This document shows positions 1,820 to 63,690 of a DNA stretch of 64,000 nt, piece after piece. Numbering within the stretch: the first letter of the stretch is position 1; each line of letters starts with the position of its first letter. Below the pieces are notes generated by a model. That model was not told the origin of the DNA, searched no databases, and worked only from the letters and a program-made list of their open reading frames with translations. Origin of the DNA: Macrostomum lignano (taxonomy: Eukaryota); assembly GCA_002269645.1 (NCBI GenBank), contig NIVC01000013.1, forward strand, positions 806,001 to 870,000. The letters run 5' to 3'. Both the position numbers and the translations under genes were made by a program.

Positions 1820-3029
1820 AGACCAGTTTCACTGACTAGCCTTCTGTACATACTGCACTCTTAAAACCAGCAATTAGCTTCAATGCTTTACGAACACATG
1901 GGCAAAAATCTGGTCTCGGCCTAACCAATCGTAATCATATTTAAAAAACGCGTAGACACTACTTACTGGAAAATTCGTCAGTAGTATAGTAGGGATATTG
2001 GGAGGTATATATTTCTTTCTATATTTAGTTGGTAGAAACAGCCATTGCATCGTCAGAAGCATATTCCAATTCAAGTACACTCGTACTCATTTTCGAGATC
2101 TGATAGACACTTTTTATTGTCGAATATCTGCTGCTATAAACTCTAGTAATCGTTCACTCAATGCAAACCTGTACAGACTTTACTTTGTCTTTTGTAACTG
2201 CTTTAATATACTTAGCTAAGTAAATGACCTCTGTTTGTAGCGATTAATTTTGTAATTAAACATTCCACACTGCTGCAGCTCCTCCATCCGTGTGGCGACT
2301 CAAATTTGCAATAAAACTCACAGCATTCCAATGAATATTTTGCTTTGCTGGCTGAGCCAAACCTCCTAACATTGTTTAATTTCAAGGGCGAGCATTTTGC
2401 ATTTTCTCTTTGTAAGGTCAGCTGCCACTCACCCGAGCAGTTGCAATTGCTATCAAATGTTCGCGATCCCAGTTCAAATTTTTTTTAGCTAATGTTTTTC
2501 TTAATCGCTCTATTCCTCTAATCGCTACTATAAGTAGCTTCTAGTTAGTAGTGTCAACAGTTTCCATGCAGTCGTTTTATAAACCCATTTCTGCCTGACA
2601 AATAAACCAATATATAGAAACACAAAGTATGCAATCTGTTTAAACAAAACTGGACTTAGAGTTTCAACAATTAGTCATTTTTGAAAGAAACAGGGACACA
2701 TCCGGATAAAATTGATTTATCCCAATTGGGGAGTTCGACAAGTAAAACATTTATACAGTTACGTTTCATTAAAACTGAATTCGCTATTTAATTTGACTGA
2801 AAGTACCTCGTGCTAGCCCAGTTAGCGGCTGCCACTTAGCTCAACTATGCAATGTGCCTAGTTACAATCTATACAGATAATGGATACGTTTGCTTTCACG
2901 GGCTTTAAAAATTGTTACAATTTGTTGCAATTGATGGAATTCGAAGTGGAAAAATGTTCACACATTTTTCTCATAGCTCTGACTGCCCTTCATTCACAAA
3001 GGAACTCACTCTTCAGCTCACTCGTGAGC

Positions 3030-3845
3030 TCACATATGAACTCATGAACTCACTTATGAACTCACTCGTGAACTCACTTATGAACTCATGACTCACTCAT
3101 GAACTTATGAACTCACTCATGACCTCATGAACTCATTCATGAACCCATGAACTCACTCATGAACTCATGAACTCACTCATGAACTCACTCATGAACTCAT
3201 GAACTCACTCATGAACTCGTGAACTCACTCATGAACTCACTCATGAACTCATGAACTCACTCATGAACTCATGAACTCACTCATGAAATCATGAACTCAC
3301 GCATGAACTCATGAACTCACTTATCAACTCACTCATAAACTCACTTATGAAATCATAAACTCACTAATGAAACCATGAACTCACTTATGAAATCATGAAC
3401 TCACTTATGAAATCACAAACTCACTTATGAAATCATGAACTCACTTATGAACTCATGAACTAATGAACTCACTTATGAACTCACTCATGAACTCATGAAC
3501 TCATAAACTCACTCATGAACTCACTTATGAAATCGTGAACTCACTCATGAACTCACTAACTCACTCATGAACTCACTCATGAACTCACTAACTCACTCAT
3601 GAACTCACTTATGAACTCACTAACTCACTCATTAACTCATAAACTAACCCATAAAGTCACTCATGGACTCATAAACTCACTCATGAGCTCACTCATCAAC
3701 TCATTCATGAACACACTTATGAACTCACTCATGAACTCACTCATGAACTCAATCATGAACTCACTCATCAACTCACTCATGAACTCACTCATGAACTCAC
3801 TCATGAACTCACTCATGAACTCATTCATAAACTTATAAACTCATG
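3030..3845. repeat. Degenerate minisatellite built from ATGAACTC / ATGAACTCACTC units
   Basis: Directly visible tandem repetition; explains ORF 3599-3838 (MNSLMNSL...). Confidence 0.95.
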
Positions 3846-4174
3846 AATGAAAGAAGAAAACCTGCACTGAACCCCCAAATTAGCATTTAAAAGTTGAAAG
3901 CAGGCAAAGTGGAAGCAGTATGGCAGCCTGATACGGTGCAAATGCCATAGCTACCTGATTGGCTGCGGGCCACAACGGGTCTCCGATAAAAAGCAGCGCC
4001 TGAATGCGGCTTGTATGAGAAATCAAAGAGCTCTCAACACATCTTTCAATACCCTTGAAACTTGAACAGAACTGCACAGAATAGCACAGCATAAAATAGT
4101 GATGCACCACTGCCTCTAGGACCCCTAGAGCTAATTGTTTCTGAATTGGTCAATAAAGCCCAGAGGGTGTAAAC

Positions 4175-4245
4175 ATGATCAGCAGAATCCTGTCCTTAGC
4201 TGTTTGTCAGACACTTCTCCTACTCGGAATTCTAGTCATCAATTC

Positions 4246-4286
<41 letters not shown>

Positions 4287-7200
4287 GCGACAATCATTTC
4301 CACCATGACAAGATAAGCAGCTTCCGAGCTGCAGCCAACAAGTCCCGGGAGAAGACTCTGATCCAGCGACTGGTGCACCGCTATCAGGACTTCGGCCTGC
4401 TTGGAAGACCAGTGCTCAACAGCTCAGATCAAATCACCATTGAGTTCGGTTTGGCCATCATTCAGATTCTCGATTTAGACGAGAATCGACAGATGCTCCG
4501 GACGAACTGCTGGCTGAGGTACACTTGGAAGGATCCTCTGCTCAATTGGGAATCTTGGTTAGCTAATGGCGAGTTCGAGAACATCACCCAGGTGAGACTG
4601 TTCCCATACGAGGTGTGGACTCCGGATATTAGATTGCACAACTTCGCAGACGAGAGACTGCTCGAGAAGCGGATGGCCCGAGTAGTGGTGTACTCAGACG
4701 GCACCGTGCTGTGGATTCCGCAGAGTCTGTTTAAAAGCACCTGTCCAGTGGAGATTCAGTACTTTCCATTTGACACACAGATCTGCTATCTGGAGTTCGG
4801 CTCGTGGACTTATGATATAACGCAGCTGAATCTCACCTGGTTCGGTTTTGAGGTGAGATTATTCCGAATTCTGAATAATGACCATCGCTCCATTAACTTT
4901 TTACCTCTGAGTATACTTCTCACTCTCTCCTGCCCACTCTCCTGCTCTCCTGCCCACTCTCCTGCTCTCCTGCCCACTCTCCTGCTCTCCTGCCCACTCT
5001 CCTGCTCTCCTGCCCACTCTCCTGCTCTCCTGCCCACTCTCCTGCTCTCCTGCCCACTCTCCTGCTCTCCTGCCCACTCTCCTGCTCTCCTGCCCACTCT
5101 CCTGCTCTCCTGCTCACTCTCCTGCTCTCCTGCTCACTCTCCTGCTCTCCTGCCCACTCTCCTGCTCTCCTGCTCACTCTCCTGCTCTCCTGCCCACTCT
5201 CCTGCTCTCCTGCCCACTCTCCTGCTCTCCTGCTCACTCTCCTGCTCTCCTGCCCACTCTCCTGCTCTCCTGCCCACTCTCCTGCTCTCCTGCTCACTCT
5301 CCTGCTCTCCTGCCCACTCTCCTGCTCTCCTGCCCACTCTCCTGCTCTCCTGCTCACTCTCCTGCTCTCCTGCCCACTCTCCTGCTCTCCTGCCCACTCT
5401 TTCATTCATCTTCTATCTCCCTCTCCCTTTCTCCATCTCACTCTGCCCTTTTCTATCTCACTCTCCCCTTCTCTATCTCACAATCCCTCCTTTGTCTCCA
5501 TCTCTCATCTATCTCTTTCCTTCTGTGCTTCGCTGTTTCCATCTCACTGATCTTCTCTGCATGTCTCACGACATCTCTGAAAGATTATTTATTGAACCAT
5601 TTCTTTACATTTCAAGTCTTTGCTGTGTTATGCATCAAACTGATGGCTTCATTTGATGACGTTGTAAACCAGCTTCAATTTTCCCCAGGAAGTTCACCCT
5701 AGAGATAATCTCATATGTTCATTCGTCATTCTACATGGGTAACACGAATACCAAATTAATTGCAGGCTGTCATAATCATGACACGATTACAGGAAATCAA
5801 AATCTATAATAAATGAACACAAAATCATGTTAGCTAAATAAAATTGACTCCTCTGCAATAGCACCCAGGCAGTCAGACAGTCAGGCAGTCAGACAGTCAG
5901 ACAGTCAGACAGTCAGACAGTCAGGCCAGTAGTTGCACACACGATAATTAAAGTTCTAACAGTGCTGACAAAGATTGATTAAAACTGACTAATTTTATCC
6001 GCGCTATCCGCCCCTGTCCTGACCCGGCTCCCGGACCAAATTTTAGCATCTAATTGTTAGGCCAGTCACACACACACAGAAATTCTCGCATGCTAACGCA
6101 CACCCACACCCACACACACGCCATGAGCCAAGTGCGCGGAATCCCACACGCTGCAGCCAGAAAGAGAGAGAGAAAAAAACGCTTGCAAACATCTAATTTC
6201 TTGCAAGCCTGCGCTAAAATGCCAGACTGAACCAATTATCTTTAGACTCCGTTGTCGCGCGCAGTGTTGAAACACAGAAAAACACAGAAAAAGCTACAAA
6301 AAACTTTTACTGTTTTACATACGACAAACGTGTAATTTTAAACTGTCGATAGTTCCCTTGGAGAGGAAAGGAGCATCAGGGGAAATCAGTCATAGGAGAA
6401 ACATTGACAAGAAAATTACAGACCTGTCTGGGGAACTCTCATGATTGCTCTGCTCCGGAGAGAGAACCAACTTCATCTCCTTCTAGCTAGGAGCAGCTTT
6501 AGAGCTCTCCCCATTCCTGCTGGATTAGCACATGCAGACACTGGTGCATTGAAGTTTGGCACCATAGACACTGGTGCATTATCACCCATAGACACTGGTG
6601 CATTATCACCCATAGACACTGGTGCATTATCGCCCATAGACACTGGTGCATTATCGCCCATAGACACTGGTGCATTATCGCCCATAGACACTGGTGCATT
6701 ATCGCCCATACACAATGGTGCATTATCACCCATAGACACTGGTGCATTATCGCCCATAGACACTGGTGCATTATCGCCCATAGACACTGGTGCATTATCG
6801 CCCATAGACACTGGTGCATTATCGCCCATAGACACTGGTGCATTATCACCCATATACACTGGTGCATTATCACCAATACACACTGGTGCATTTTCACCAA
6901 TACACACTGGTGTATTATCGCCGATAGACACTGGTGCATTATCGCCCATAGACACTGGTGCATTATCGCCCATAGACACTGGTGCATTATCGCCCATAGA
7001 CACTGGTGCATTATCGCCCATACACACTGGTGCATTTTCACCAATACACACTGGTGCATTATCACCCATAGACACTGGTGAATTGTCACCATAGACACTG
7101 GTGTATGAGTATTATCACACAGATACTGGTGCTCAGACACTAGCGTATGAGTCTCATGACTCATGACTGCTCATTCTTTGAAAATATGTGTAAAAATAGA

Positions 7201-10200
7201 AGCAACGCAATAAATAAACTAATGCCTTCGAATAAAATTACATTACACTCCGTTGCTACAAAGTCGCTTCGCTGTCACGCTAATTTGAATCACGCACAGT
7301 AATTTCCGTTTCAATTGACGGGCTTCAGAAATTGAAAGCAGCTTAATGCGGATGGCAGGTTCTGAAACAATTTCCTGTTCATGAAGGAACACCAATCGGG
7401 AACCGCAGAATTAAGTTTTCCAATAATTGAAATGAGATGATGCGAGTAAATCAGGCAATTCTAATGATGATGAAAAATAGTAAAAGAAAGATAAAAATTA
7501 AACCTGAATTAAATATAGAGATAGCTTATACTAGAAAAGTAAGATTTACCATTAGTCAAATCAGTTATATTAATCCTAACAGCAATGCCTCTGCAGAAGC
7601 TCACAAAATTTAATAATTCAAGTCAGGATGTCTACGAGAATATTGTGTAATTTTCTGAACCGAACAAGGCAGTTCTAATGAAACCGTCATTCATAGGTCA
7701 TGCAAGAGAAAAAAACTCGTGTTTGGCTGACATGGACACAACTTGGTCGGCTGTGCACTGCTTTCATCTTAGAAGCTCTAAAAGCTTAAGATTAGGCCTT
7801 GACAGAGAACAAGCTTTTTACACTTGCTGTGCAGTAGTGAGGCTTCTTTATGACCCCGCTGAAGTTGCGATTACCAAAATAAATGGTGAAAATTCTTAGC
7901 TTGTGAAAAAAAATCAGTGCGTATATTAAGAGACCTAACGGGTGCATTACTACCCATAGACACACAGGGGTGTACCACCCATAGACACACAGGGGTGTAC
8001 CACCCATAGACACACAGGGGTGTACCACCCATAGACACACAGGGGTGTACCACCCATAGACACACAGGGGTGTACCACCCATAGACACACAGGGGTGTAC
8101 CACCCATAGACACACAGGGGTGTACCACCCATAGACACACAGGGGTGTACCACCCATAGACACACAGGGGTGTACCACCCATAGACACACAGGGGTGTAC
8201 CACCCATAGACACACAGGGGTGTACCACCCATAGACACACAGGGGTGTACCACCCATAGACACACAGGGATACATCACCCATAGACACACAGGGATACAT
8301 CACCCATAGACACACAGGGGTACATCACCCATAGACACACAGGGATGCATCACCCATAGACACACAGGGATACATCACCCATAGACACACAGGGATACAT
8401 CACCCATAGACACACAGGGATACATCACCCATAGACACACAGGGATACATCACCCATAGACACACAGGGATACATCACCCATAGACACACAGGGATACAT
8501 CACCCATAGACACACAGGGATACATCACCCATAGACACACAGGGGTACATTTTAGTACCCATAGACACACAGGGATACATCACCCATAGACACACAGGGA
8601 TACATCACCCATAGACACACATGGATACATCACCCATAGACACACAGGGATACATCACCCATAGACACACAGGGATACATCACCCATAGACACACAGGGA
8701 TACATCACCCATAGACACACAGGGATACATCACCCATAGACACACAGGGGTACATTATTACCCATAGACACACAGGGATACATCACCCATAGACACACAG
8801 GGGTACATCACCCATAGGCACACAGGGGTGCATTACTACCCATAGACACACAGGGATACATCACCCATAGACACACATGGATACATCACCCATAGACACA
8901 CAGGGATACATCACCCATAGACACACAGGGATACTTCACCCATAGACACACAGGGATACATCACGCATAGACACACAGGGATACATCACGCTTAGACACA
9001 CAGGGTAAATTGCTACCCATAGACACACAGGGATACATCACTCATGGACACTCAGGGGGTTACATTACCACCCGTAGACACACAGGGGTACATCACCGAA
9101 GTACATTACTACCCATAGACATGCAGGGTTACATTTCTACCCATAGACACACAGGGGTGTACCACCCATAGACACACAGGGGTGTACCACCCATAGACAC
9201 ACAGGGGTGTACCACCCATAGACACACAGGGGTGTACCACCCATAGACACACAGGGGTGTACCACCCATAGACACACAGGGGTGTACCACCCATAGACAC
9301 ACAGGGGTGTACCACCCATAGACACACAGGGGTGTATCACCCATAGACACGCAGGTGCATATACCAGTCAAAGATATGAGATTCTGCAAAAGTTCTGCAA
9401 AAGTACAAATCAGCGATGGGTTGCTGGAAAACTGCGTAGCTATAATACGAGTAAAACGGTATTTCGAAAATACACTGGCTTTCTCGAATCAACACGAATG
9501 TTGCCCTAAAAATGGGACAAAAATGTTGTAGCCGAGGACTTCAGAAATTTAATTTCTCTTGGACCCGTGGGAGTTTTATAGCCATGGTTCCGCGTGCAAC
9601 AATTTAATATGAGATGAGTTGCAGAGACGAAAAGAAGAGAGGACAGTGGCGGCCCCCTTCCCAGCATTCGCCGATTCCATAAGCGAAAGCTAGAAAAAAT
9701 GAAGTCAAGTAAAAAACACGTTTTCAGATCTCAATTCCGGGTGGCTCACTAATAATCTCGACGCCTGTGCCAGCTAAACCTCGTATGAATGAGCCATGAG
9801 CTTCCGCGGGGACTCTCGCATTTCTCTTGTTGCAGTAAATTATTAATCAATTAATCACGTTTTGGTTGCATGTGCGTGACTGAAGCGATAATAGGGACTT
9901 TTTTACGTACGTAATTTCCATTCTTTCTCTCTTAACGTCTCTTCTATTGTTGCCCGACTGCATAGCGGGGCCAAAGTCGATTGATCCTGCTTAATACAGA
10001 CGCTCTCAAGTACTTGCGGGTTGTAATAATTTTGCCAGCTCTCTCGAGCACTGTTTCGATAGAGGTCATGGGTGCTTTCTAAACTACTACGCCACTACGG
10101 GAATGTTTAGGCAAATGTTGTCTGGTCACGCGACAACCGGTTTTCACTCATTTGTGTAGATTCACGTACTACTGCTAGGTCAAGGAGTAAAATAACTTTC

Positions 10201-11346
10201 ACCAACCACACTGACACTCTGCAGTACGAGCCGTTCAGCTACGAACCCAATCCGTACGTAGACTTTACCAACTACATCAAGAGCAACGAGTGGTACTCGG
10301 ACGGCCAAGACGAGTATCGAGTTCGACCGTCGCTACGCAATCGACAAATTCGGTCGCAGATCCGCTGCACTAACGTCACCTATCAGGACCCAAGCGGACG
10401 GCTGTACAATCGGACCTACAAGAAACTGGAGTACAAGATCCGCATGCACCGAAATCCGGCTTTCTACCTGTCAATCCTGGTCCTGCCCTGCATTCTGCTG
10501 TCATGTCTCACCTGGGTGATCTTCTGGCTGCCACCCGAGTCGCCAGCGAAGACCCAGCTTGGCATGAACATCTTCGTGGCATTTTTCATTCTTCTCCTGC
10601 TGTTAGCGGAGACAACTCCCAGCGCGGTTCGCACCTTTCCACTCATCGGCTATTTCTACTGCCTCAACATGATTCTCATAACGCTTAGCACCTTCCTGGC
10701 AACTATCGTACTTAATCTCTACTTTCGAGCCGAAAGTCAGGGACGCTTAAATCCAATTTTACGCAGATTAGTAGTCGAGGGCCTCGGCCGATTGTTCCTC
10801 GTGCGACAGTCGGTTCCTCTGCCGCCAGTGCGTTGCGAAGAGCTGGACAAGACGCCAACGCAGCCGCCGCAGTCGTTGTTGCTGGCTTCGGTGGCCGGTC
10901 TTCGTCGAGTGCCACCGCTTCGGCACAACAAATTCGACAACAGTGTTGCGGAGTCGGAGGCCGACTTCACAATCGGCTGCGATCAGCGACCTCCGGCCAC
11001 GGTGGAGGAGGCTATGTCCGGTCTGAAAGCAACCCCGGACCATTCGCCGATTTTGTCGCGACCCAGCGGCCCGTTGGAACGCGAGGTGCACGAGGTCAAG
11101 CGGCACCTGCGATTATACCTTGGCAGGCTGCGCGACAAGGAGAAGCGTAACCTCATAGCGATGGAGTGGCGAGCTATGGCTATGGTGCTGGACAGGGCCT
11201 TCTTCACGCTCTACACCCTGGCTATCCTAATCGCTGTGCTGCTACTCATTCCCAGGTCACATCCGGAGTCACTGGACCATTATGACCCAGCCGAAAGGCT
11301 GGACTGCACCCTCCCACCGCTGCCACAGCTGCCTAAGACTGTCTGA
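4175..11346 (+). CDS. Cys-loop ligand-gated ion channel, nAChR-like non-alpha subunit with an anion-selective-type M1-M2 linker (ACh-gated chloride channel-like); exons 4175-4852 and 10225-11346
   Basis: Signal peptide; WTPDI loop A region; Cys-loop CPVEIQYFPFDTQIC; loop B GSWTYD. Phase-0 intron gag|gtgaga (4853) ... ctgcag|tac (10224) joins the frames. Four TM segments, LPPESPAK before M2, EW-type MA helix and M4. No vicinal Cys-Cys in loop C. Confidence 0.95.
4925..5400. repeat. 20-bp minisatellite (ctcctgctctcctgcccact), ~24 copies, in the receptor intron
   Basis: Visible period of 20; a 60-bp higher-order pattern appears from ~5101. Confidence 0.95.
5866..5930. repeat. Short (CAGTCAGA)n microsatellite
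   Basis: cagtcagacagtcaggcagtcagacagtcaga... Confidence 0.85.
6535..7105. repeat. 24-bp minisatellite (catagacactggtgcattatcgcc), ~23 copies
   Basis: Visible tandem repeat; translates as (DTGALSPI)n in ORF 6441-7094. Confidence 0.95.
7941..9355. repeat. 25-bp minisatellite (catagacacacaggggtgtaccacc / catagacacacagggatacatcacc), ~55 copies
   Basis: Period 25 measured at 7961/7986/8011; two sequence variants arranged in blocks. Confidence 0.95.
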
Positions 11347-12048
11347 CTGACTGACTGACTGACTGACTGACTGATTGACTTAAGTGAGTGAGTGAGTGAG
11401 TGAGTGAGTGAGTGACTGACTGACTGACTGACTGACTGATTGACTTAAGTGAGTGAGTGAGTGAGTGAGTGAGTGAGTGAGTGAGTGAGTGAGTGACTGA
11501 CTGACTGACTGACTGACTGATTGACTTAAGTGAGTGAGTGAGTGACTGAGTGACTGACTGACTGACTGACTGACTGACTGACTGACTGACTGACTGACTG
11601 ACTGACTGACTGACTGACTGACTGACTGACTGACTGACTGACTGACTGACTGACTGACTGACTGACTGACTGACTGACTGACTGACTGACTGACTGACTG
11701 ACTGACTGACTGACTGACTGACTGACTGACTGACTGACTGACTGACTGACTGACTGACTGACTGACTGACTGACTGACTGACTGACTGACTGACTGACTC
11801 TCATTGACTGACTGACTGACTGACTGACTGACTGACTGACTTGAGTGAGTGGGTGACTGACTGACTGACTGACTGACTGACTGACTGACTGACTGACTGA
11901 CTGACTGACTGACTGACTGACTGATTGACTGACTGACTGACTGACTGACTGACTGACTGACTGACTGACTGACTGACTGACTGACTGACTGACTGACTGA
12001 CTGACTGACTGACTGACTGGACTGACTGACTGACTGACTTGAGTGAGT
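11337..12048. repeat. Compound (GACT)n/(GAGT)n tetranucleotide microsatellite, ~700 bp, starting at the receptor stop codon
   Basis: Directly visible; explains the antisense (SQSV)n ORFs. Confidence 0.97.
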
Positions 12049-13338: not shown

Positions 13339-15168
13339 TCATTTATTTGCCAACCGACTCCGCTTGCCCGTCGCGTTTTTCTTGCCGAACCTTCCGCCGG
13401 CGCCACCGCCCCGGCCACAGGCGTCGTTCTTTCCGACATCCTGATCGAGCCAACGCGCCCGAGCGGCTCCACGTTGGTAGCTGGGCCTGTGCTGCTCGCT
13501 CCACAAATCGAAAACGTCGTGTACCAGCTGCTGCGAGGTCTTGCTAGTTGGCGGCGCCAGCAGTTGCATTCGAATCTCAGCGTAGGTTTCGCCGCGTTCG
13601 GTCACGGGCGGCACCGGGAGAGCTTCGATTGGTGACTCTTCCTCGGTCAGCGGCAGCACCGCTCGATTTGTGTACCGCAACAGCTGCTGCTTTGCCATCA
13701 GCCGTTCTTGCCGGCCGATGACCGACCATTCACGAGGACTGCGTAAACTTACTGGGTCGCTTTTGTGTGCGCTAGCGCGGCCTCGCTGTTGAAGGCACTG
13801 CGAGATACGGGTGTAGCCCAGCTTCCTCGATAACAGGTAAGGCGTGATGCCCTCTGCGTCAGGCATGTCTACGCTGACGTCTAGCCGACGAAACTCGTCG
13901 ATGATGATCTCTACGGTGGGTAAGCTGCCGGACATCACCGCGAGGTGCATATAAGTGAGACCGAGGGCGTCGCGGTACTGAAGATTGACCTGAAAAGATA
14001 TGCAATAAAAGGAATTAATTTCGATGAGGATGTCTTAAGCTACTAGTGGATTTTGCTAATACCACTGAAAAACTTCTACTGATATGAATATTTTGCATGC
14101 AAGGCGACAACTCACCTCTTCCGTTGTGTCCCGCAAAATATCGCGCAACTCCTCGTGCCGACCCAGCGCTGTTGCCCAGCCAACTAGATCCCGTCTGTAC
14201 TGGTCGTCAACTCCGTCATAGACAGCTCCATGATGAGCCAGGTAGTTGAACACTTCCTGGCGTCTTTTTTCGGCGCCTATGTGCAATGCGGCCATCAGAG
14301 GCGTCTTACCATCGGCCGGGTCCACGCTGCGAATGCTGACTACACGTAGGAAGTACAGAATGTTCGACAGTTGGCCCTGGAATTTAGGACACGCTTGGTT
14401 ACTTAGTAACGGTGTTTCGTCATTAACGTTTGCGTCGCATTCAAAGCACTGAAATTTACATACAAGTATTGTCATAAACAAGCTATTACACGTACATTGA
14501 ATCATTAAATCACCATTCACCATTGAATCTCTGGTACGAGGGTAATTACATAATAATAATACTGAACCTACAGAATATTATGTGCCTTAATTATCCTAGG
14601 CGAGGCTATCTAATAACAAAAACTCAATTATAAAACCTTGGTAATTTTTATGAATTTTCAAAATATATAGATGTACATGTAGCATGTTCTTGTATAACTT
14701 TAGTAATCTAGCCATCGTTGATATGAAATATGCAACGCCTAGCAACAGGCTAAAAATGGACTACTCTAAGTTCTTCAAAAAGTGTATGCTTCGTACTCAT
14801 ATCACAAAGGTACTTTCCACAGTTGAACAGACCTGATAAATGGCTTTGAAAAACTCGTGAGCGTTCAGATTTCGCTTAGGAACGTGCGCATGCCGTCTCA
14901 GCAGCATCTTGGTGCTATTAACGCTTGACTCTTTGTTTAACTGACGCGAACCCGGTGGCATAATATTAGAATAGAACACTGGCACTATAGAGATGGTCGG
15001 CTCCCGTTCCTGTGGCTGACCTTGCGACGCCGAGGCAGGTGCAGTTGCTCCGGAGGCGGTCGCCGGCCCAGGTCCCAGTGGTCGCTTGACTTTCGGCTGC
15101 AGCATCTCTTTATGCAGCGTTAATCGCACAGTCAATTGGTCTTCGTCTTGACGCTTAGTCATGTACAT
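13339..15168 (-). CDS. Ankyrin-repeat protein, ~439 aa; exons 15168-14833, 14448-14116, 13989-13339
   Basis: Ankyrin motifs DGKTPLMAAL, DALGLTYMHLAV, DAEGITPYLL. Two phase-0 GT-AG introns join the three track ORFs in frame (AIYQ|CFEC, TTEE|VNLQ). Confidence 0.85.
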
Positions 15169-16328: not shown

Positions 16329-16522
16329 ACTAGAAATGAAAGTCTGATCAAGTTAAAGAAGCTATTATCAGTTGAAAAAAACACGCAAGTATAGTGCAGT
16401 GCGGTTTTGTAAATTATTTAACGTCAAATTCTTGCATCTTACGCAGTATCGTTTATGTACATTCCAATTGAACATAAATAAGGGTACGCGCATTAGTCGA
16501 CAGTACAAACTGTCAGAACGGT

Positions 16523-17402
16523 TTAGCGAAAATTTGCGCCAAAGTGGCACAGCATCCGACGGCAGAGAAAGCGACAACCTCGTTGCAAAGGTGTCTTTGT
16601 TGCTGCCTGCTGAATGGTTGCAAATTTTTCGATTGGTTTGCGATCGAATTGAAGACTTGAGGGAAGAGTGCCATGGCGCTGCGATGAAGCACTCGACTCA
16701 TCGCTGCTTGGCAAGTTGTATTCATCGTCGTCATCGTTAATATGGATGTTGTGTGCCTGTGCACATAAGTTCTCATTGTCGATGGGCATTGGTGTCGCTT
16801 GAGATAAATCCCAGCAACACTGCTGCTGATGGAGAAAATCTTCACTTTGGTGTTGCCTAACCTCTGCGTTTGACCTGTCAGGTTATAAGAAATAAGCATA
16901 TCCCATGATATTTTTGAAGATCCTTTATATGAGAACTGGTATCTCCTACTCACCTTGGTGTTTCGCTACAAACTGTCTCAAATCTAGTTGGTAGCGAGTC
17001 TTCACACTGACTGGATTGAAAATTCGTCATCTGCTGTCGCTGTTTCTTCTCGTGCTCGGCCAGCAGTTTCCGCGCCGCCTTCATCATGCTGTACTGCCAG
17101 ATCAGCAGTCCCAATCGATCTCCGGGCAGCAGCTTTTCTCCGGGTTCTCGCACCCAATAGAGCTCGCGAATTGCCTTGCACGGAGGGACGCCCCGATGCA
17201 TGCGACTCGAGGTCGCCTCTGTTTCTGCTAGTTTCGCCTCTAGAAAGTTCTGCAAAGCGGCCAGACGGCATTTCGTAAATCGAGACGAGCTTGATTGGAC
17301 AGACTTTGCGGAGTTTTGCCACGAATACTGGCTCTGCTCCCAGTTGGAAGGACTGCTTCCAGACAAAGCGGATTTGGATGAACTTTGCGAATAGGTTTTC
17401 AT
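16523..17402 (-). CDS. Orphan protein, ~266 aa; exons 17402-16954 and 16874-16523
   Basis: A 79-nt intron ccaag|gtgagt ... tgacag|g joins ORF 16950-17402 in frame with ORF 16523-16789. Codon-like stretch WVREPGEKLLPGDRLGLLIWQY...AARKLLAEHEKKQ. No domain recognised. Confidence 0.55.
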
Positions 17403-20197: not shown

Positions 20198-23100
20198 TTA
20201 GAATGTGTTTAAGAGAGGCCTGTGGCCACTCATCTCCAGCTCATCGTAACCAGAAGAATTTTTCAGCAGAAGCGAATCGAATTCATTAACACCTCCATGG
20301 TTCGGTACAAAAGACCTGGGCAGCCAAGGCAGACCACGCAGAATCTTATTCATAAGGTGGTACTGCCAATCCCTACTGCCGTATCGAATTGTGTGCCCCC
20401 GAGTCAAGAGGCGCATCCACAACTCCATGCCCTTGCGCTCCTGGTTGGTTCGGAAAGTTTCTTGCAGATGGGACAGTTGCATCTTCATTTCGTCCTGCCT
20501 GTCAGCAGTGATCAAAATGAGATCCCTTGCCATTCTAAGGTTTCCTAGTTCTCCCGTGATCAGCCGAATTTCATTGGTGTTGCTTTGCATCAGTTCTGTT
20601 GATAGCAGAACCAAGACCTTAACGCTTCTCTGTACAAAATAGGGAATGGACTCAGCTTTAGTTGCCAGTTCTTCTGATGGCGCTTGCTCGCCTGAATGGC
20701 GTACCACAATGCCTCTGCTTCCGGGGATCTCCGTGGGCGGCTTATTTAGATGTTTCAATATTTCCGATGCAATATCGCTGTCGCTGTCGTCGAAATAGAA
20801 AAATACGTGAAAACTTTCGTCTCCTCGATAGCGTCGAGGCTTCACTAGGTGGGTTATGACGACGTGCATAATCATGCTTTGAACAAAGTGTCGCCGACGC
20901 ACAAGAAGCGCCGTTATAATAAGACCAGCAGCGATGCTTATCGTGCTCAAAGTTGTCTGTAGAATTTTAAGTTTTAACTGAGCCTTTTGCTTGTCGATAT
21001 CTTTGCACATTTTTTTGAGCAAAGTTACACTATGCATTGGGAAGCTAGATAATGTGAAATTGGTTTTGACGAAAGAGAGGTTGTAGAAGTTGAAATCTGT
21101 GACGAATTCATCCGTTAAGTTGCAAGTTAGCTGTCTATAGTCATTAATGACACTCTTGACTCCATCGTATTGAGCCATTTCTTTCAGGTAGTTTAAATGG
21201 ATGGGAGAACAGCCACATACGAAGGGGTTGCCGAAAAGCTCTACAGTTCCTAAAGCTAACAGGGGGTCGAATACACGTTTGACAGACACCATTGTCAAGT
21301 TGTTATGACGGAGGTCGAGATGGCTTAGCGAATGCTCGAGGCCAGCAAATGTGCGTTCGTTTAGCTGTTTTATTCTGTTGTGAGGAACAATTATTTTGGT
21401 CACTTCAGGTGTCTTGGCGAATGCATAGTCTGCAATAGTAACTATATTGCTTTGCTGGGCTCTGAATTCTTTCAGGCTGAATCGATCTTCATCAAATTTC
21501 CAGGTGATGGTGTCGTTGCAAAAGGCCTGAATAAAGCTGGTCGTCATGTGCGAAAAGTCGAGCACAGTTATAGGCATAGGAATATTTCTAGCCGAGTTCG
21601 GTATTCCACGGACTGAGCAGTTCATTATGGTTTTGATGGCATTCGACCAGCAATAGCACTTAGGGTTGCATTTACCAATACAAGTTCCATTTTTTCGTTT
21701 GCAAACCGACACTGGCAGCTCAATTCTACTAGAGTCGCGAAGCTCGCATCCGAAATCATTCAAATGCAGAGCTGCAAACATCTTAGTAACGTTGCGTCGA
21801 CCCCCCAGGCTTCTCGGGAGTAGCCGGCATTCGGTTTTCTGCCTCTCCTTAGTGGCAATAGTTGGCATTTTGTACGTATGATTGTCGCTCTGCTCTTCCA
21901 GCATTGTACTAAGAAAGAAGTGCTGACAGTTGCACACAATGGTAGTCTTCTGTTTAGCTATGCTTACTTCAACTCGATCGGATGGGGCGTGTCGTTGTGT
22001 CGTTTTAAAGCTGTCGAATGGCATGTATTCGAGCATATTTTTGCTGAGATCAATTTTCTCAAGAATGGGATAATTAGTGAACGCGGATGAAGCTATGGAA
22101 GATATTAGATTGCCTTCCAAATGAATTGACCTCATGCTTCTCGAACTCGGCAAAGTGTCCCTTTTTATACAAGAAATTTGATTATTCGCAGCATTGATTC
22201 GGATTGCCTTGCTTAAACAGGTTAGATTTACTGTCTTCAAATGGTTGTTTTGAATGAAGATACGGTTCAAACTTGATGCCAGGCTTCCCGTAAATGAGTC
22301 GGTGCCTAAGACAGCCAATCTGTTGTAGGAGAGATCCAGAGTCTCCAGATTAACCTGAATTGATTTGTTAAAGGTGTACCGTTAAAACTGTTCAAAAGAA
22401 GCAACTATATTCAGTCAACCAAAGTAGATAACTTACCTGATACCAAGGCTCCACTTGGCCGAGATATTCTATTAAATTGTGGGAAAGATCAAGAACACGC
22501 AAGGATTTTCTGGATGACCAAAACCAATAGCATTGGCGCTTTGTTTTCTCCTTTATGGACAAGGGTATGCCGGTGGGAGGTCCTCCCCAGCAACCGGACA
22601 CGTCGTACAAGTCCTTAATCCCATTATTGCTTAAGTTTAGCGTGTTCAAATCGCTCATCATCGATATGCAGCTGGGAATGACAGTAAGGTGATTATTCGA
22701 CAAGTCCAAACTGTGCAGCGGATTCGCCTTGTGCAGGTCACGGACAGTTTTGCCTAGAATTAGGCGGAACTCGACATTGCTCATCTCCATCGCGTAGTAC
22801 AGAGCTCGAATGTCTGTGACAGCTCCGCTTGCTTGGATCATTGAATCGATGATTTCCTTGGCTCGGGTGGTAAAATTGGAGCACCGTTTGCCGAGACATT
22901 CTAATTTAAGAGGTTGTTCGTTCATACCGGCGATCGCTCGTTCGTCGAGACCTTCACCAAAGTAGAACATTTCGCAACCCGAAAGTACTACAACCTCAGA
23001 TGCTGATATGGCTAATACGTCCATTTCAGTTAGATCCTGATTTTTCAGAATAAAATTTATAGAGGAGAATTTAATCAGGGAAGCAAAATTAATATAAAAA

Positions 23101-25354
23101 CTGTGTGAAAATGGCAATCAATAACATCGAAGTAAACTGCTGATAAATATAACTTTTTGCTGTCCATTTGAGCTTACGCGCATTAAATTTAATCAGAGAT
23201 ACGTTTGCGAAAAGAATGGAGATTTTGTCCGAGGTAACAAGGCTTGCACAGCAGCATTTAATTTGGTCCAACAAGCAACAGCTTGGACCATTAGATATTA
23301 TGAAACCCAATCATAAGTTACAGCTATACAATGGATAAATAATCAGCGGTCTCAGTGTGTGACAACGATTGTCTGGCGAGCGCCGGTAGCGTTAATGGGA
23401 AAATCAGAGGGCGCAGTTAGGCGCCCGAGGATTTTTCATTAACGCCCGCGGCGCGAGCCATAGACAAATCGTTGTCACGTGCTGCGACTGCTGATTCTTT
23501 GCATTGTTTTTCTGTTTGACGATCCTAAAAACATTGCTTAGCAATTTGACGATCATTATTCACATTTTTAATGCAGAACAATCCATTACTACAAACAATG
23601 CATTGTCTGTAGGATCGTCAAACAGAAAAACAATGCAAAGAATCAGCGGTCGCAGTGCGTGACAACGATTGTCTGACGAGCGCCCTCGCTCGGTAGGCGC
23701 GGTAGGCGCTAGCCATAGACAATCGTTGTCACGCACTGGGACCGCTGATTATTTATCCAATGCATTGTTTGTAGTAATGTACGAGTATTGTTCTGCATAA
23801 AAAATGCGCATAATGATCGTCAAATTGCTAAACAATTAATTTTTTTGAGCAAATTTCACTGTACCAATGCAACAAGACGTAACAAATATTGAATACAATC
23901 TGCTCAACGACAACAAAATAAAAAAGCATTTCAGCATGGTCAAAACTGCGCTTCGATCACAAGCCCTTGGCGTTTGTTCGACAATCTAACATATGGTTCA
24001 CGATTCTGGGAATGCTCTGGCTCTTCCTCCGCAGTTACGAACAAATCATTGCTTTCATACTCACTGAAGTATAGGGGAGAAAATATAGAGCACTATGGAC
24101 CGAATTGATGCTTGTTGGACCAAAGTAAATGATGCTGATGGCATCCTTAAATTGCTATCATAGACAAAAGTTGCATTATTTCGGGAAACATATCTTGAAT
24201 TAAATCCGATGCGTTTAAGCCCAAAAAGCTGAAAAAAGCACAATACTTGTATTAGCTAATACCCTTTGAACTTCAAATTCGTTAAACAGTTAATCGAATT
24301 TGAAGCCACTTTGCTCAGCCTTTTGCGGTAGACACATGATTAGTCCCACCCCAGCAGTAAAGTTTCTGAGCATTTGTGTTGACAAATTTCACTCACTGTG
24401 GCAATGTTTCAGTTGCTGGCGGAATCGGATTTTGCCATAGACGTGGTATATCTTAGCTGATGAATTCCCTCACTTCGTCAAATTCGAAGTCATTTTTTCC
24501 TACTCTACCCAACCCAATAGCACTAGGATTAGCTGCGTGCATGCCTGACGAATTCGAACTCATTTTTGACGAATTAAAGTTGAAAATGTATTTCTATGAT
24601 TATGAATAGTTCTGAAATTACGAAATTAGCTTACTTAGCCTTGTAACTTATCAAATTACACGTAAAGCTATATCTTACAAACAAGACTCGATTCTGCCTT
24701 CAGTTAAATTTGTCTTATAAAACTCATACACCCGTAGTTAAAAAATTCTTACCCGAAGCCGGAGTTAACGATATGAATTCTACAGATACTTGGACAGTTC
24801 TGCAGCAGCCAGTTCGGCAGCCTCAAATCGGAGTCCCTGATGTGCAGACTGTGCAACGAGCAGCCAAATTTTTTCACATCGCTAGTCGACTTGTTGCCAT
24901 GGCTGGAAATAAACCCAGCAGAGCCCGTAATTTTTTCACTTCCGTCGTTGATTAGAACAAAATTGCTTCTGTCCAACGGTTCGGCCTCGTCGACTTCGTC
25001 GAGCTGGCAGCCGGTGATCTCCAGGCGAAGCAGACTCGAACGGCGAACTAAGCTATGTAGGTGCAGATTGGTGCAGGCGCTAAAATTGTTGCAATCAATC
25101 TTCAAGCTGCTGAGCTTAGTTGGACTAATATCTGTGCAGGGCAGCTGATCAGCTGGGACCTGATGCCCCGCCACCAGACGACAGATGGCCTCGCTGCGAG
25201 TAGCTTTCGTACAGGCGCAGACGGCGGGACCGGTCTCGCTTTGGTTGGTGCATTGTATGGACAGCCAGGCTGGATCGCCGCGTAGGCCAGGCTCGGAAGC
25301 CGGTTTAGCGCTCCAGGCTACTGTTGGCAGCAGCAGCAGTAGCAGCAGCAGCAT
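20198..25354 (-). CDS. Toll-like receptor, multiple-cysteine-cluster (protostome/Toll) type: signal peptide-LRRs-LRRCT-LRRNT-LRRs-LRRCT-TM-TIR. Firm exons 23036-22437 and 22354-20198; probable first exon 25354-24753; a short linking exon (e.g. starting at 24063) is unresolved
   Basis: LRR motifs (LHSLDLSNNHL, LRVLDLSHNLI, LETLDLSYNRL, LSHLDLRHNNL); internal CNC and CNPKCYCW clusters; NPFVCGC LRRCT; hydrophobic TM ~20905-20975; TIR-like domain from FHVFFYF. An 82-nt phase-0 intron at 22436-22355 joins frames. First exon starts MLLLLLLLLPTVAWSA and ends at donor gg|gtaaga. Confidence 0.85.
23332..23835. mobile_element. Complex of interlocked inverted repeats (two palindromic MITE-like units) in a TLR intron
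   Basis: Three inverted pairs: 23332-23374/23717-23759, 23462-23526/23611-23674, 23534-23605/23758-23835. Confidence 0.8.
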
Positions 25355-27408
25355 GGATACACTCTCACCAGCTGCTAGTATGAGGCGTTTTGAATCATTC
25401 ATGTCGAATTCATGTGAAGCAGGCAAAAATTGTTTTTAGAGTTTTTGAAATTGCTCGCTTATGTAGCCCGATGCTGCCACGCATTAAATTGTAGTAGAAT
25501 CAATGATACTAGCCTTGTACAGCAATAGTTGCATTACAATGAGCGGAGGAATATGCTTATTTACGAGCAGCTCTCCTGTCCCTTTCTCAAACTCATTCGC
25601 TTTATGCATGCGCATTATTCTCTCCTGTGGTCACTCACTAAGCATGTTAGTATTGTACGTATCTCGGTGCTTTCATAGCCGAAGCGAAAAAAGCAAGAAA
25701 ACAATGCTTAAATTCAGGATGCTAAATCTTTCGGAAATGGTCAGCTCTCAGTGCAGAAAACCACTAAGTTTTTTCTGAGAAGTTTCTCTAGCTAAGCTTG
25801 ACCTAAAATGAACTCGGGGCAATGGAACAGATTGTTGGAAAAGTAGACAAACGAATGATTTTATGTAGCAATGAGACAGAAAGCAGAAAAATAAATATCA
25901 CACCAGACTTATATTTATGCATAAACTGCATTTCATTGAATGAATAATAAAGGAGAAATTATCAGCGTCTGCGTCTAGACAGAAAAAATATTCCCGCGGC
26001 TTAGTAAAACAAGATCAGGAAAATATGCGTGGAAATTTCGGGAGATTACAAGTTAAAGAAGCAGCCAACTTTAAGTATTTAGCGCTTTTGCATGCGAACA
26101 GAGTCATAGTATTGCAATTCTAAAAAGTTTGTTATAGACCCAAGTACACCAGTTCAAGATTATTTACACCGACAAAACCTTCCGAGAGATAAAGTTAACA
26201 GTCGAAGAAAACTTGACTAAAATATTTAGCAAATCCAATTTTCAGCAGTACGAACTATTTGCGAGAAAGTATTTATTGAAAGTCAAAAGCTTGGCGCATA
26301 AGAATGTCTATTTGGGATTTACCTATGTCTTCAAGCTGCTACACCTGACACGGTAAACGTGAAAAGTTCGACGTACGCTCGTATTATATTTGTAAACAAT
26401 TCAGCATTTTCAGACGACTCACTGTCAGAGTTTGGGCGCTCAAGATTATATTAATTGATTTGTAAAATATTTATTAGCCAACTGAACAAAACAATGTGAT
26501 TTCGTCAGCCGTCTCAGCTATCCGATAAGATACAAAGCAATGATTAGATAATATTAAAACAAAAGTTTTAACGCAAGCTGCGGTTAAAACAAAGAAAAGA
26601 CAGTGAGAAAGGGTACAGTAACATAGTATAATATTAAATATTAAAATTAATGGGCGGGACAAGCTAACATGCAAACAATATTGCTGTTTTATCTTACCGG
26701 CACTGAAGGCAATGGTTGACGAAGATACACTTCAAATCTTGCAGAATAGACAAGCTTATATATCTTGTTAAAGCGCTTAAAATTTCAGGAACAAATTTTC
26801 GTAGTCACTTCACATAAAGTGATTTTACTAAGGTTTTGTCGAGTGAAATTTCTGAAATGCAATATCGAATGAACAGTTCAACAGTTCAGTTAAAAAGCAT
26901 GCACGATTTTAAACGAAAATATGAGACATTTTTTATCGAATCGCTTGTAATGAAAATATTGTTTCATTGCGACTTCCATCACAGAAGAGTAAAAGAAGTG
27001 CACAGACGCAGAGTAAGTTCTTTGCTTTTTCAACGTGCAAGCCAGAGTCTGCGATGACAGAAGTCCTCTCGCTGTGATCGGTGAGTCTGAAAAAAGAAGA
27101 GGTAGTTTAAAAAGGCTTGTTTCAGACCATCGGCGAGGAAGGACAGTCGATATTAGCATCAGCTCTACGATCTACGAGATTTAAGTTTAACCGACCGAAA
27201 AACTTTTAGGTATAAATGATAGATAGTCAAAAGTTCAAAAGTCTCATGATATTTTATGACGAGTGAATATAAACGCTTATTTTGCAGGATGAAGTTCGGA
27301 GTTCAAAACCTGCAAATTGGTGCTACACTTTAAAACACCAGCGAAAAAGTATTCTTACACCTTTTTGAGCATAATAAAAATATCAGAATATTGTGATCGC
27401 TACCTGGA

Positions 27409-62589
<35,181 letters not shown>

Positions 62590-62888: not shown

Positions 62889-63690
62889 CCTATCCACTGG
62901 CAGCTCTATCTATCCACTGGCAGCTCTATCTATCCACTGGCAGCTCTATCTATCCACTGGCAGCTCTATCTATCCACTGGCAGCTCTATCTATCCACTGG
63001 CAGCTCTATCTATCCACTGGCAGCTCTATCTATCCACTGGCAGCTCTATCTATCCACTGGCAGCTCTATCTATCCACTGGCAGCTCTATCTATCCACTGG
63101 CAGCTGTATCTATCCACTGGCAGCTCTATCTATCCACTGGCAGCTCTATCTATCCACTGGCAGCTCTATCTATCCACTGGCAGCTCTATCTATCCACCGG
63201 CAGCTCTATCTATCCACTGGGCTCTATCTATCCACTGGCAGCTCTATCTATCCACTGGCAGCTCTATCTATCCACTGGCAGCTCTATCTATCCACTGGAA
63301 GCTCTATCTATCCAGGCAGCTCTATCTATCCACGGCAGCTCTATCTATCCACTGGCAGCTCTATCTATCCTGAGGCAGCTCTATCTATCCACTGGCAGCT
63401 CTATCTATCCACTGGCAGCTCTATCTATCCACCGGCAGCTCTATCTATCCACTGGCAGCTCTATCTATCCACTGGCAGCTCTATCTATCCACGGCAGCTG
63501 TATCTATCCACGGCAGCTCTATCTATCCACTGGCAGCTCTATCTATCCACTGGCAGCTCTATCTATCCACTGGCAGCTCTATCTATCCACCGTCAGCTCT
63601 ATCTATCCACTGGCAGCTCTATCTATCCAAGGCAGCTCTATCTATCCACTGGCAGCTCTATCTATCCAATGGCAGCTCTATCTATCAGTG
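62889..63690. repeat. 20-bp minisatellite (ctatctatccactggcagct), ~40 copies, ~300 bp upstream of the otoferlin ATG
   Basis: Visible period 20; explains ORF 62766-63779. Confidence 0.95.

Follow-up and report, generated by a model that had tools for sequence, protein, structure and literature searches.

Drosophila Toll is a P-type, or multiple-cysteine-cluster, Toll of protostomes, and Caenorhabditis elegans, an animal not known to have MyD88 or NF-kB, has a single divergent Toll, TOL-1. Flatworms have been described as devoid of such receptors. Orus-Alcalde et al. (2021), defining a Toll-like receptor (TLR) by leucine-rich repeats (LRRs), a transmembrane (TM) segment and a TIR domain, counted 0 TLRs in Macrostomum lignano itself and suggested a possible early loss of TLRs in the flatworm lineage; they also recorded unnamed 'TLR-like' proteins in flatworms (PMC8609888). 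Their search of the 2015 M. lignano genome applied a TIR hidden Markov model (HMM) first, then an LRR HMM, and then BLAST and SMART (PMC8609888). A 2021 review gives no TLR orthologues in Platyhelminthes, and planarian reports conflict, with Smed-MyD88 described in one and MYD88 absent in another. The literature searched contained no report of a Macrostomum TLR or of the gene Mlig030947, and nothing relevant on Macrostomum together with MyD88. Here we analyse Mlig030947g1, a gene on the minus strand of a 64,000-nucleotide (nt) stretch of M. lignano DNA (the window). The locus is copy g1 of a two-copy gene, and its product is probably a type-I membrane receptor, a P-type member of the Toll family that has diverged fast from the spiralian TLR stock. 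The name that fits it best is Toll-type (P-type) receptor, with a TIR-like domain that is degenerate.

Gene structure and receptor layout

The window is identical to contig NIVC01000013.1 of assembly GCA_002269645.1, and exon 3 is 100% identical to PAA94200.1 ('hypothetical protein BOX15_Mlig030947g1 [Macrostomum lignano]'; named 'TIR domain-containing protein' by UniRef). A first-pass annotation, made from the letters of the window alone, had taken the host to be flatworm-like and had stated that canonical TLRs were reported missing in surveyed flatworms; M. lignano belongs to the Platyhelminthes (Macrostomorpha), and the stated absence agrees with the published count for this very species. 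The receptor is overlooked in the literature and not in databases, the protein being already deposited. Its three coding blocks on the minus strand (25402-24753, 23036-22437 and 22354-20198) match the M. lignano gene at 100%. A second copy, found in the 90% cluster, is PAA63714.1 (Mlig030947g2, 1,144 amino acids, a 5'-partial model on contig NIVC01001818.1); exon 1 is joined to exon 2 in the gene model of this copy, and from this intact copy the length of the receptor is judged to be ~1,135 amino acids from the first Met. The features of the g1 locus, in window coordinates, are as follows.

25402-24753, minus strand: exon 1, with signal peptide (25402-25310), N-terminal cysteine cluster (25252-25136) and the first irregular LRRs
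24761/24760, minus strand: 1-nt deletion site, g1 being without one A present in g2, 10 nt before the exon 1 donor (pairwise DNA alignment)
24752-23037, minus strand: intron 1, 1,716 nt, GTAAGA...AATCAG, with splice sites taken from the sequence and the g2 model
23036-22437, minus strand: exon 2, 200 codons of LRRs (Pfam LRR_4 1.7e-10, LRR_8 1.2e-9)
22436-22355, minus strand: intron 2, 82 nt, GTAAGT...TTCAG, phase 0, with the exon 2 donor CAG/GTAAGT read from the sequence
22354-20198, minus strand: exon 3, 718 codons plus stop, one continuous open reading frame (ORF)
21940-21746, minus strand: LRRCT-1 (IVCNC...C...DFGC), aligning with the first LRRCT of a spider Toll
21703-21596, minus strand: internal LRRNT-2 (C..C...CNPKCYC......NCS), aligning with CPHPCHC...NCS of the spider Toll
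21229-21005, minus strand: membrane-proximal LRRCT-2 (NPFVCGCS...LTC...C), aligning with NPFNCNCS of the spider Toll
20965-20900, minus strand: TM helix, a 22-residue hydrophobic segment ILQTTLSTISIAAGLIITALLV followed by RRR, aligning with the spider Toll TM segment
20815-20327, minus strand: degenerate TIR-like domain, from box-1-like FHVFFYF to box-3-like WQYHLMNKILRGLP

The first-pass annotation had described a complete receptor starting at 25354. Three long minus-strand frames do lie at that place, but g1 as assembled is frameshifted at the end of exon 1, and position 25354, although within the same signal peptide, is the second Met: the open frame of exon 1 has a stop just upstream in frame and its first in-frame ATG is 25402. 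The signal-peptide-like segment that follows (MNDSKRL...LLLLLLLLPTVAWS, 25402-25310), recognized by hydropathy and inspection only, lies in an exon that is out of frame with the rest in g1. Intron 1 has the donor CGG/GTAAGA and the acceptor AATCAG/GAT, and the junction across intron 2 (...PWYQ/VNLETL...) is found in both GenBank models. Exon 3 runs from LRRs through LRRCT-1, LRRNT-2, four LRRs and LRRCT-2 to the TM helix and the cytoplasmic domain. As all of these are encoded in one ORF, LRR and TIR-like parts must share a transcript, and the refuting condition named in the first-pass annotation, that they are not one transcript, cannot apply to the second LRR block, the helix and the tail. 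The assembly was built from PacBio reads with Canu and polished with short reads (Pilon), and its gene models are genome-guided RNA-sequencing (RNA-seq) transcripts (PMC5730564); the gene is therefore expressed, and the g2 model that joins exons 1, 2 and 3 is transcript-based. No expression data for Mlig030947 were found in the literature or in two supplement sets.

Intron 1 (23037-24752) contains nested inverted repeats, for example arms at 23467-23537/23600-23670 (71 nt, 92% complementary) and at 23326-23374/23717-23765. It measures 1.7 kb in g1 and ~3.6 kb in g2, with pieces that match g2 in both orientations, and its repeat looks like a foldback or a miniature inverted-repeat transposable element (MITE)-like sequence.

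The order of parts in the receptor is signal peptide, LRR block, LRRCT, LRRNT, short LRR block, LRRCT, one TM helix and a 233-residue cytoplasmic tail. Of the layout that had been proposed for the locus (LRR-LRRCT-LRRNT-LRR-LRRCT-TM-TIR), everything up to the TM helix holds, whereas the last part, the TIR domain, scores only 14.3 bits against a required 21.3 and has no box 2. Pfam finds LRR_8 (8.1e-25), LRR_4 (4e-11) and LRR_5 (3.9e-9) on the full g2 protein and the same families on window exons 2 and 3, and a pattern search gives ~15 LRR motifs. The Pfam LRRNT and LRRCT models gave no match on the receptor; the cysteine clusters rest on alignment and cysteine pattern. BLASTP against a spider 'protein toll' (P0048) returned one colinear high-scoring segment pair (HSP; 554 columns, E = 1e-9, 23% identity) that spans LRRs, LRRCT, LRRNT, four LRRs, LRRCT and the TM helix and runs into TIR box 1. 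Within it, LRRCT-1 pairs VCNC...DFGCEL with VCDC...QFTCEL, the LRRNT pairs CNPKCYC...NCS with CPHPCHC...NCS, and the first TIR box pairs SFHVFFYFDDSDSDIA with IFDAFVSYSNSDRDIA. The TM segment is the sole strongly hydrophobic 19-residue stretch apart from the signal peptide. The internal LRRNT-2 cluster is a mark of multiple-cysteine-cluster (P-type) Tolls, and the one-to-one cysteine alignment with the spider Toll shows the more than one LRRCT and the internal LRRNT by which P-type receptors are recognized.

The best TIR-bearing matches of the receptor are mollusc and arthropod P-type TLRs. Its ectodomain is at most ~25-30% identical to any TLR, and a search with the N-terminal 438 amino acids returned generic LRR proteins only. 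Two unnamed matches (P0025 and P0027) were considered as orthologues and ruled out on comparison. The suggestion of an overlooked, fast-evolving TLR is largely right: the host is a flatworm for which the only survey found to have counted it gives 0 TLRs, and fast evolution fits both these low identities and a phmmer search with the cytoplasmic tail against 1.8 billion representative proteins, which found only the receptor itself and no relative at E ≤ 0.001.

The cytoplasmic tail

Whether the protein belongs among TLRs turns on its 233-residue tail. TIR (PF01582) is the sole Pfam family, among 24,736, to match the tail at E < 10, covering profile positions 15-137 of 179. A local TIR HMM made from 16 TLR matches scored the tail at 7.9 bits, a value reached by 0 of 2,000 shuffled sequences (maximum, 7.8); the reversed tail scored -1.5. 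In a MAFFT alignment the tail runs colinearly with ten TLR TIR domains between boxes 1 and 3 (12-22% identity), keeping register at box 1, in the helix-C region (SxKVLVLLS), in strand D (LILI) and at box 3. Box 1 is retained in part (FHVFFYF versus FDAFVSY, the Asp being lost), as is box 3 (WQYHLMNKILRGLP versus WFWEKLRYALP). A single-sequence AlphaFold2 model of the tail shows beta-alpha alternation at low confidence. The UniRef name of the protein also counts in favour of a TIR domain.

Several results weigh against reading the tail as a TIR domain. The Pfam match has E = 0.035 and its 14.3 bits lie below the gathering score of 21.3; hhalign of the tail gave P = 0.016 and a probability of 2.9%; and pairwise phmmer comparisons of the tail with individual TIR domains were weak. 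Box 2 (the RDxxPG BB loop) is absent, the tail having HSGEQAPS at the place of HYRDFxxG; the hallmarks gone comprise the box-1 Asp, the box-2 RD..PG and the SxW-C..E motif. AlphaFold2 run with no alignment reached a predicted local distance difference test (pLDDT) score of 39, and the Foldseek matches of that model were meaningless. An alignment made from TIR domains raised the score to 66, in a test that is circular and carries little weight, and Foldseek of this second model placed TIR domains (TLR10, SIGIRR, RUN1 and TLR2; template modelling scores of 0.44-0.57) among its top matches but did not set them apart from other alpha/beta folds of the flavodoxin, ParA and Rho kinds, at E ≥ 4e-3. 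A phmmer search of PDB sequences with the tail returned no TIR domain. No orthologue was found in another flatworm or animal in protein searches, so cross-species conservation is not demonstrable; as the phmmer search described above found only the receptor itself, no orthologue alignment of the tail is possible.

These observations leave room for a different protein: an LRR-only 'TLR-like' membrane protein whose tail is non-TIR or a dead remnant, serving in adhesion or guidance, or else as a co-receptor, with no TIR signalling. Such proteins exist in flatworms (Orus-Alcalde et al.; PMC8609888). The subthreshold Pfam score and low hhalign probability, the missing box 2 and other TIR hallmark residues, and structure predictions that gave no TIR confirmation all fit this alternative, and the top ectodomain matches include chaoptin and artichoke, which are LRR-only proteins. 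However, chaoptin and artichoke are without the LRRCT-LRRNT-LRR-LRRCT-TM layout, and the single Pfam family to emerge from the 24,736 is exactly the one that this layout predicts. The failure of all shuffled tails to match the TIR HMM score, the colinearity of the box 1 to box 3 alignment at the right distance from the membrane, and the zero amino-acid changes in the tail between g1 and g2 also speak against it. We therefore regard an LRR-only protein as unlikely, and a tail of TIR ancestry as probable rather than demonstrated. Because the TIR match is below the Pfam threshold and box 2 is missing, the label of canonical TLR would rest on a weak, in-register similarity, and the more cautious wording of a Toll-type receptor with a TIR-like domain is preferred.

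Two copies, a frameshift and the surrounding genes

The two copies lie on contigs of 1.39 Mb (g1) and 70 kb (g2). In the g2 model, exon 1 runs in frame into '...DLTEMDVLAIS' of exon 2. At the corresponding place g1 has lost 1 nt: the window reads AACTCC-GGCTTCGG/GTAAGA where g2 reads AAGTCCAGGCTTCGG/GTAAGA. This counts against a full-length receptor from g1, in which the exon 1 donor (24753/24752) and the g2-type acceptor (23037/23036) differ in frame by 1 nt; spliced as in g2, the reading frame meets a TAA at 23032-23030, three codons into exon 2. Because of this frameshift in exon 1, the GenBank model of g1 starts at a Met at 23024 and has 914 amino acids and no signal peptide. Our own first full-length model of g1 used the acceptor CACACAG/T (exon 2 start at 23100), which restores the frame and gives 1,156 amino acids; it was dropped after g2 revealed the junction. 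The acceptor at 23100 is identical in g2, where its use would break the frame, and it has no transcript support.

The shift in g1 may be a genuine lesion, or it may come from faulty polishing, which the use of short reads makes possible in a duplicated region that is 98% identical. If the deletion is real, g1 would be a young pseudogene that yields no full-length receptor, and g2 alone would be functional. The deposited assembly carries the deletion even after Pilon polishing; in the annotation, the ORF caller assigned g1 914 amino acids with no signal peptide and g2 1,144; and the DV1 line has extra duplicated chromosomes, which would leave one copy redundant (PMC5730564). Set against this, g1 is otherwise intact, with no stops, canonical splice sites and an exon 1 omega of 0.18; short-read polishing is unreliable across blocks that are 98% identical; and the acceptor at 23100 would give g1 a frame of 1,156 amino acids, albeit at a site that is identical in g2 and lacks transcript support. 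We consider a pseudogenized g1 a serious possibility, although somewhat less likely than not.

The substitutions between the copies point, as far as sequence comparison goes, to a working gene. Across 1,131 codons there are 19 synonymous and 26 nonsynonymous differences (omega ~0.39); exon 1 has 5 synonymous and 3 nonsynonymous differences (omega 0.18); and the cytoplasmic part has 0 amino-acid changes in 233 codons, with one synonymous change. As there is only this one synonymous change, gene conversion could explain the cytoplasmic identity equally well as constraint. Divergence between g1 (20201-25402) and g2 (contig region 10028-17107) is uneven, at ~2.2% in the exon 3 ectodomain, 1.25% in exon 1 and ~0.5% both in exon 2 and in the TM and cytoplasmic part. 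This unevenness may reflect patchy gene conversion between duplicated chromosomes.

Both copies sit between a ferlin gene upstream and a gene of 266/267 amino acids plus an ankyrin-repeat gene downstream. In the window, the ferlin (otoferlin-like) gene, with FerB and C2 domains, occupies ~28794-53213 on the minus strand, and the same gene stands beside g2. Downstream of the receptor, also on the minus strand, are a ~266-amino-acid gene with no Pfam match (16513-17402) and the ankyrin-repeat gene (13339-14523); since both lie beside g2 as well (contig region 18987-23061), the duplicated block covers several genes. The first-pass annotation was also right about the neighbours, a minus-strand ferlin gene and a plus-strand Cys-loop receptor.

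That annotation had also described the receptor exons as AT-richer than those of the neighbours, which is right for exons 2 and 3 against most neighbours and wrong for exon 1. Exons 2 and 3 have a GC content of 0.44-0.47 and a GC content at third codon positions (GC3) of 0.50-0.53, compared with 0.50-0.60 and 0.65-0.70 in most exons of the ferlin, Cys-loop receptor and ankyrin-repeat genes, the GC range being 0.50-0.57 when only the first two of these genes are considered; exon 1 has a GC of 0.53 and a GC3 of 0.60, and two neighbouring exons are as low as exons 2 and 3. A foreign gene, acquired by contamination or by horizontal transfer from a TLR-rich animal, would explain the lower exon GC, and exons 2 and 3 are indeed lower in both GC and GC3 than most neighbouring exons. 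Yet the two syntenic copies lie on M. lignano contigs with the same host genes flanking them, the receptor gene has spliceosomal introns, no donor emerges (no protein is more than ~30% identical among 5.8 billion), and exon 1 and some neighbouring exons overlap in GC. Foreign origin is extremely improbable, and as the cause of the low GC it is ruled out by the synteny of the two copies. More simply, the low GC would reflect weak codon bias in a gene that is expressed at a low level or evolves fast.

Elsewhere in the window, the Cys-loop ligand-gated channel gene lies at 4175-11346 on the plus strand (Neur_chan_LBD 7.7e-45; Neur_chan_memb 2.5e-30). Its first coding ORF continues into a 20-nt tandem array (4925-5400), and its large intron has arrays at 6562-7103 and 7952-9355. 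Further large tandem arrays are found at 11337-12039, 3017-3847, 48011-48430, 57447-57972, 61164-62149 and 62890-63686; the units of the arrays include GACT repeated 175 times, an 87-nt unit repeated 6 times and 20-21-nt units repeated 40-47 times. A high simple-repeat load has been reported for the M. lignano genome, in line with these arrays (PMC5730564).

Proposed mode of action and relation to known Tolls

A receptor of this build would descend from the spiralian TLR stock with very fast divergence, keeping the Toll layout in its ectodomain while its TIR domain was eroded to the edge of detection; such erosion would be the reason why HMM-first surveys scored M. lignano without a TLR. In the mechanism that we propose, the LRR ectodomain would bind a ligand and dimerize, the membrane helix would relay this to the TIR-like domain, and the TIR-like domain would then assemble with a partner. 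With box 2 (the BB-loop RDxxPG) and the conserved SxW/E residues lost, signalling would probably not follow the classical MyD88-type relay between TIR domains, and would more likely be akin to that of divergent single Tolls such as C. elegans TOL-1 or of the developmental and adhesion Tolls of insects. That M. lignano keeps a functional Toll-family receptor with a cryptic TIR domain and non-canonical signalling, in animals with no clear MyD88 or NF-kB, is a possibility that we put forward tentatively, with appreciably less confidence than the assignment of the gene to the Toll family.

If this is true, TLRs were not lost at the base of Platyhelminthes, and either the loss came after the split of Macrostomorpha or similarly cryptic Tolls in other flatworms have been missed by HMM thresholds. 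A Toll-type gene in an early-branching, transgenesis-ready flatworm would alter the picture of TLR-free flatworms and shift the placement of TLR loss on the tree; it would show that surveys filtering first on a TIR HMM are able to miss eroded TIR domains; and it would offer a tractable system, with RNA interference (RNAi) and transgenesis in M. lignano, for studying what a Toll does where the classical pathway has decayed. Should the tail prove not to be a TIR domain, the gene would count as just another LRR membrane protein, and the accepted view would hold. We regard the receptor as a lead of moderate interest on how flatworm innate immunity evolved, one that hinges on proof of the TIR fold and on orthologues.

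Compared with described P-type Tolls (the spider protein P0048 and the unionid mussel TLRs P0006, P0007 and P0009), the Mlig030947 receptor has the same order of parts from the signal peptide to the domain in TIR position, the same ~four LRRs between the cysteine clusters and a tail domain that likewise begins ~30 residues past the membrane. It differs from them in an identity of only ~22-25%, in a TIR match below the Pfam cutoff with no box 2 and no conserved helix C Trp/Glu, and in a ~20-residue insertion before box 3. Like C. elegans TOL-1, it appears as the only P-type Toll, and a fast-evolving one, in a lineage otherwise said to have lost the canonical pathway, and TOL-1 may plausibly be its functional counterpart, in signalling by a non-canonical route and in roles that are neural or behavioural; the TIR domain of TOL-1, unlike that of Mlig030947, is recognized by standard models. 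Strict HMM thresholds would file the M. lignano protein with the LRR-only TLR-like proteins, which is presumably how the 2021 survey treated it. Unlike those proteins, it joins LRRs, a TM helix and a TIR-like part on one polypeptide and in one exon, with a TIR signal that is in register.

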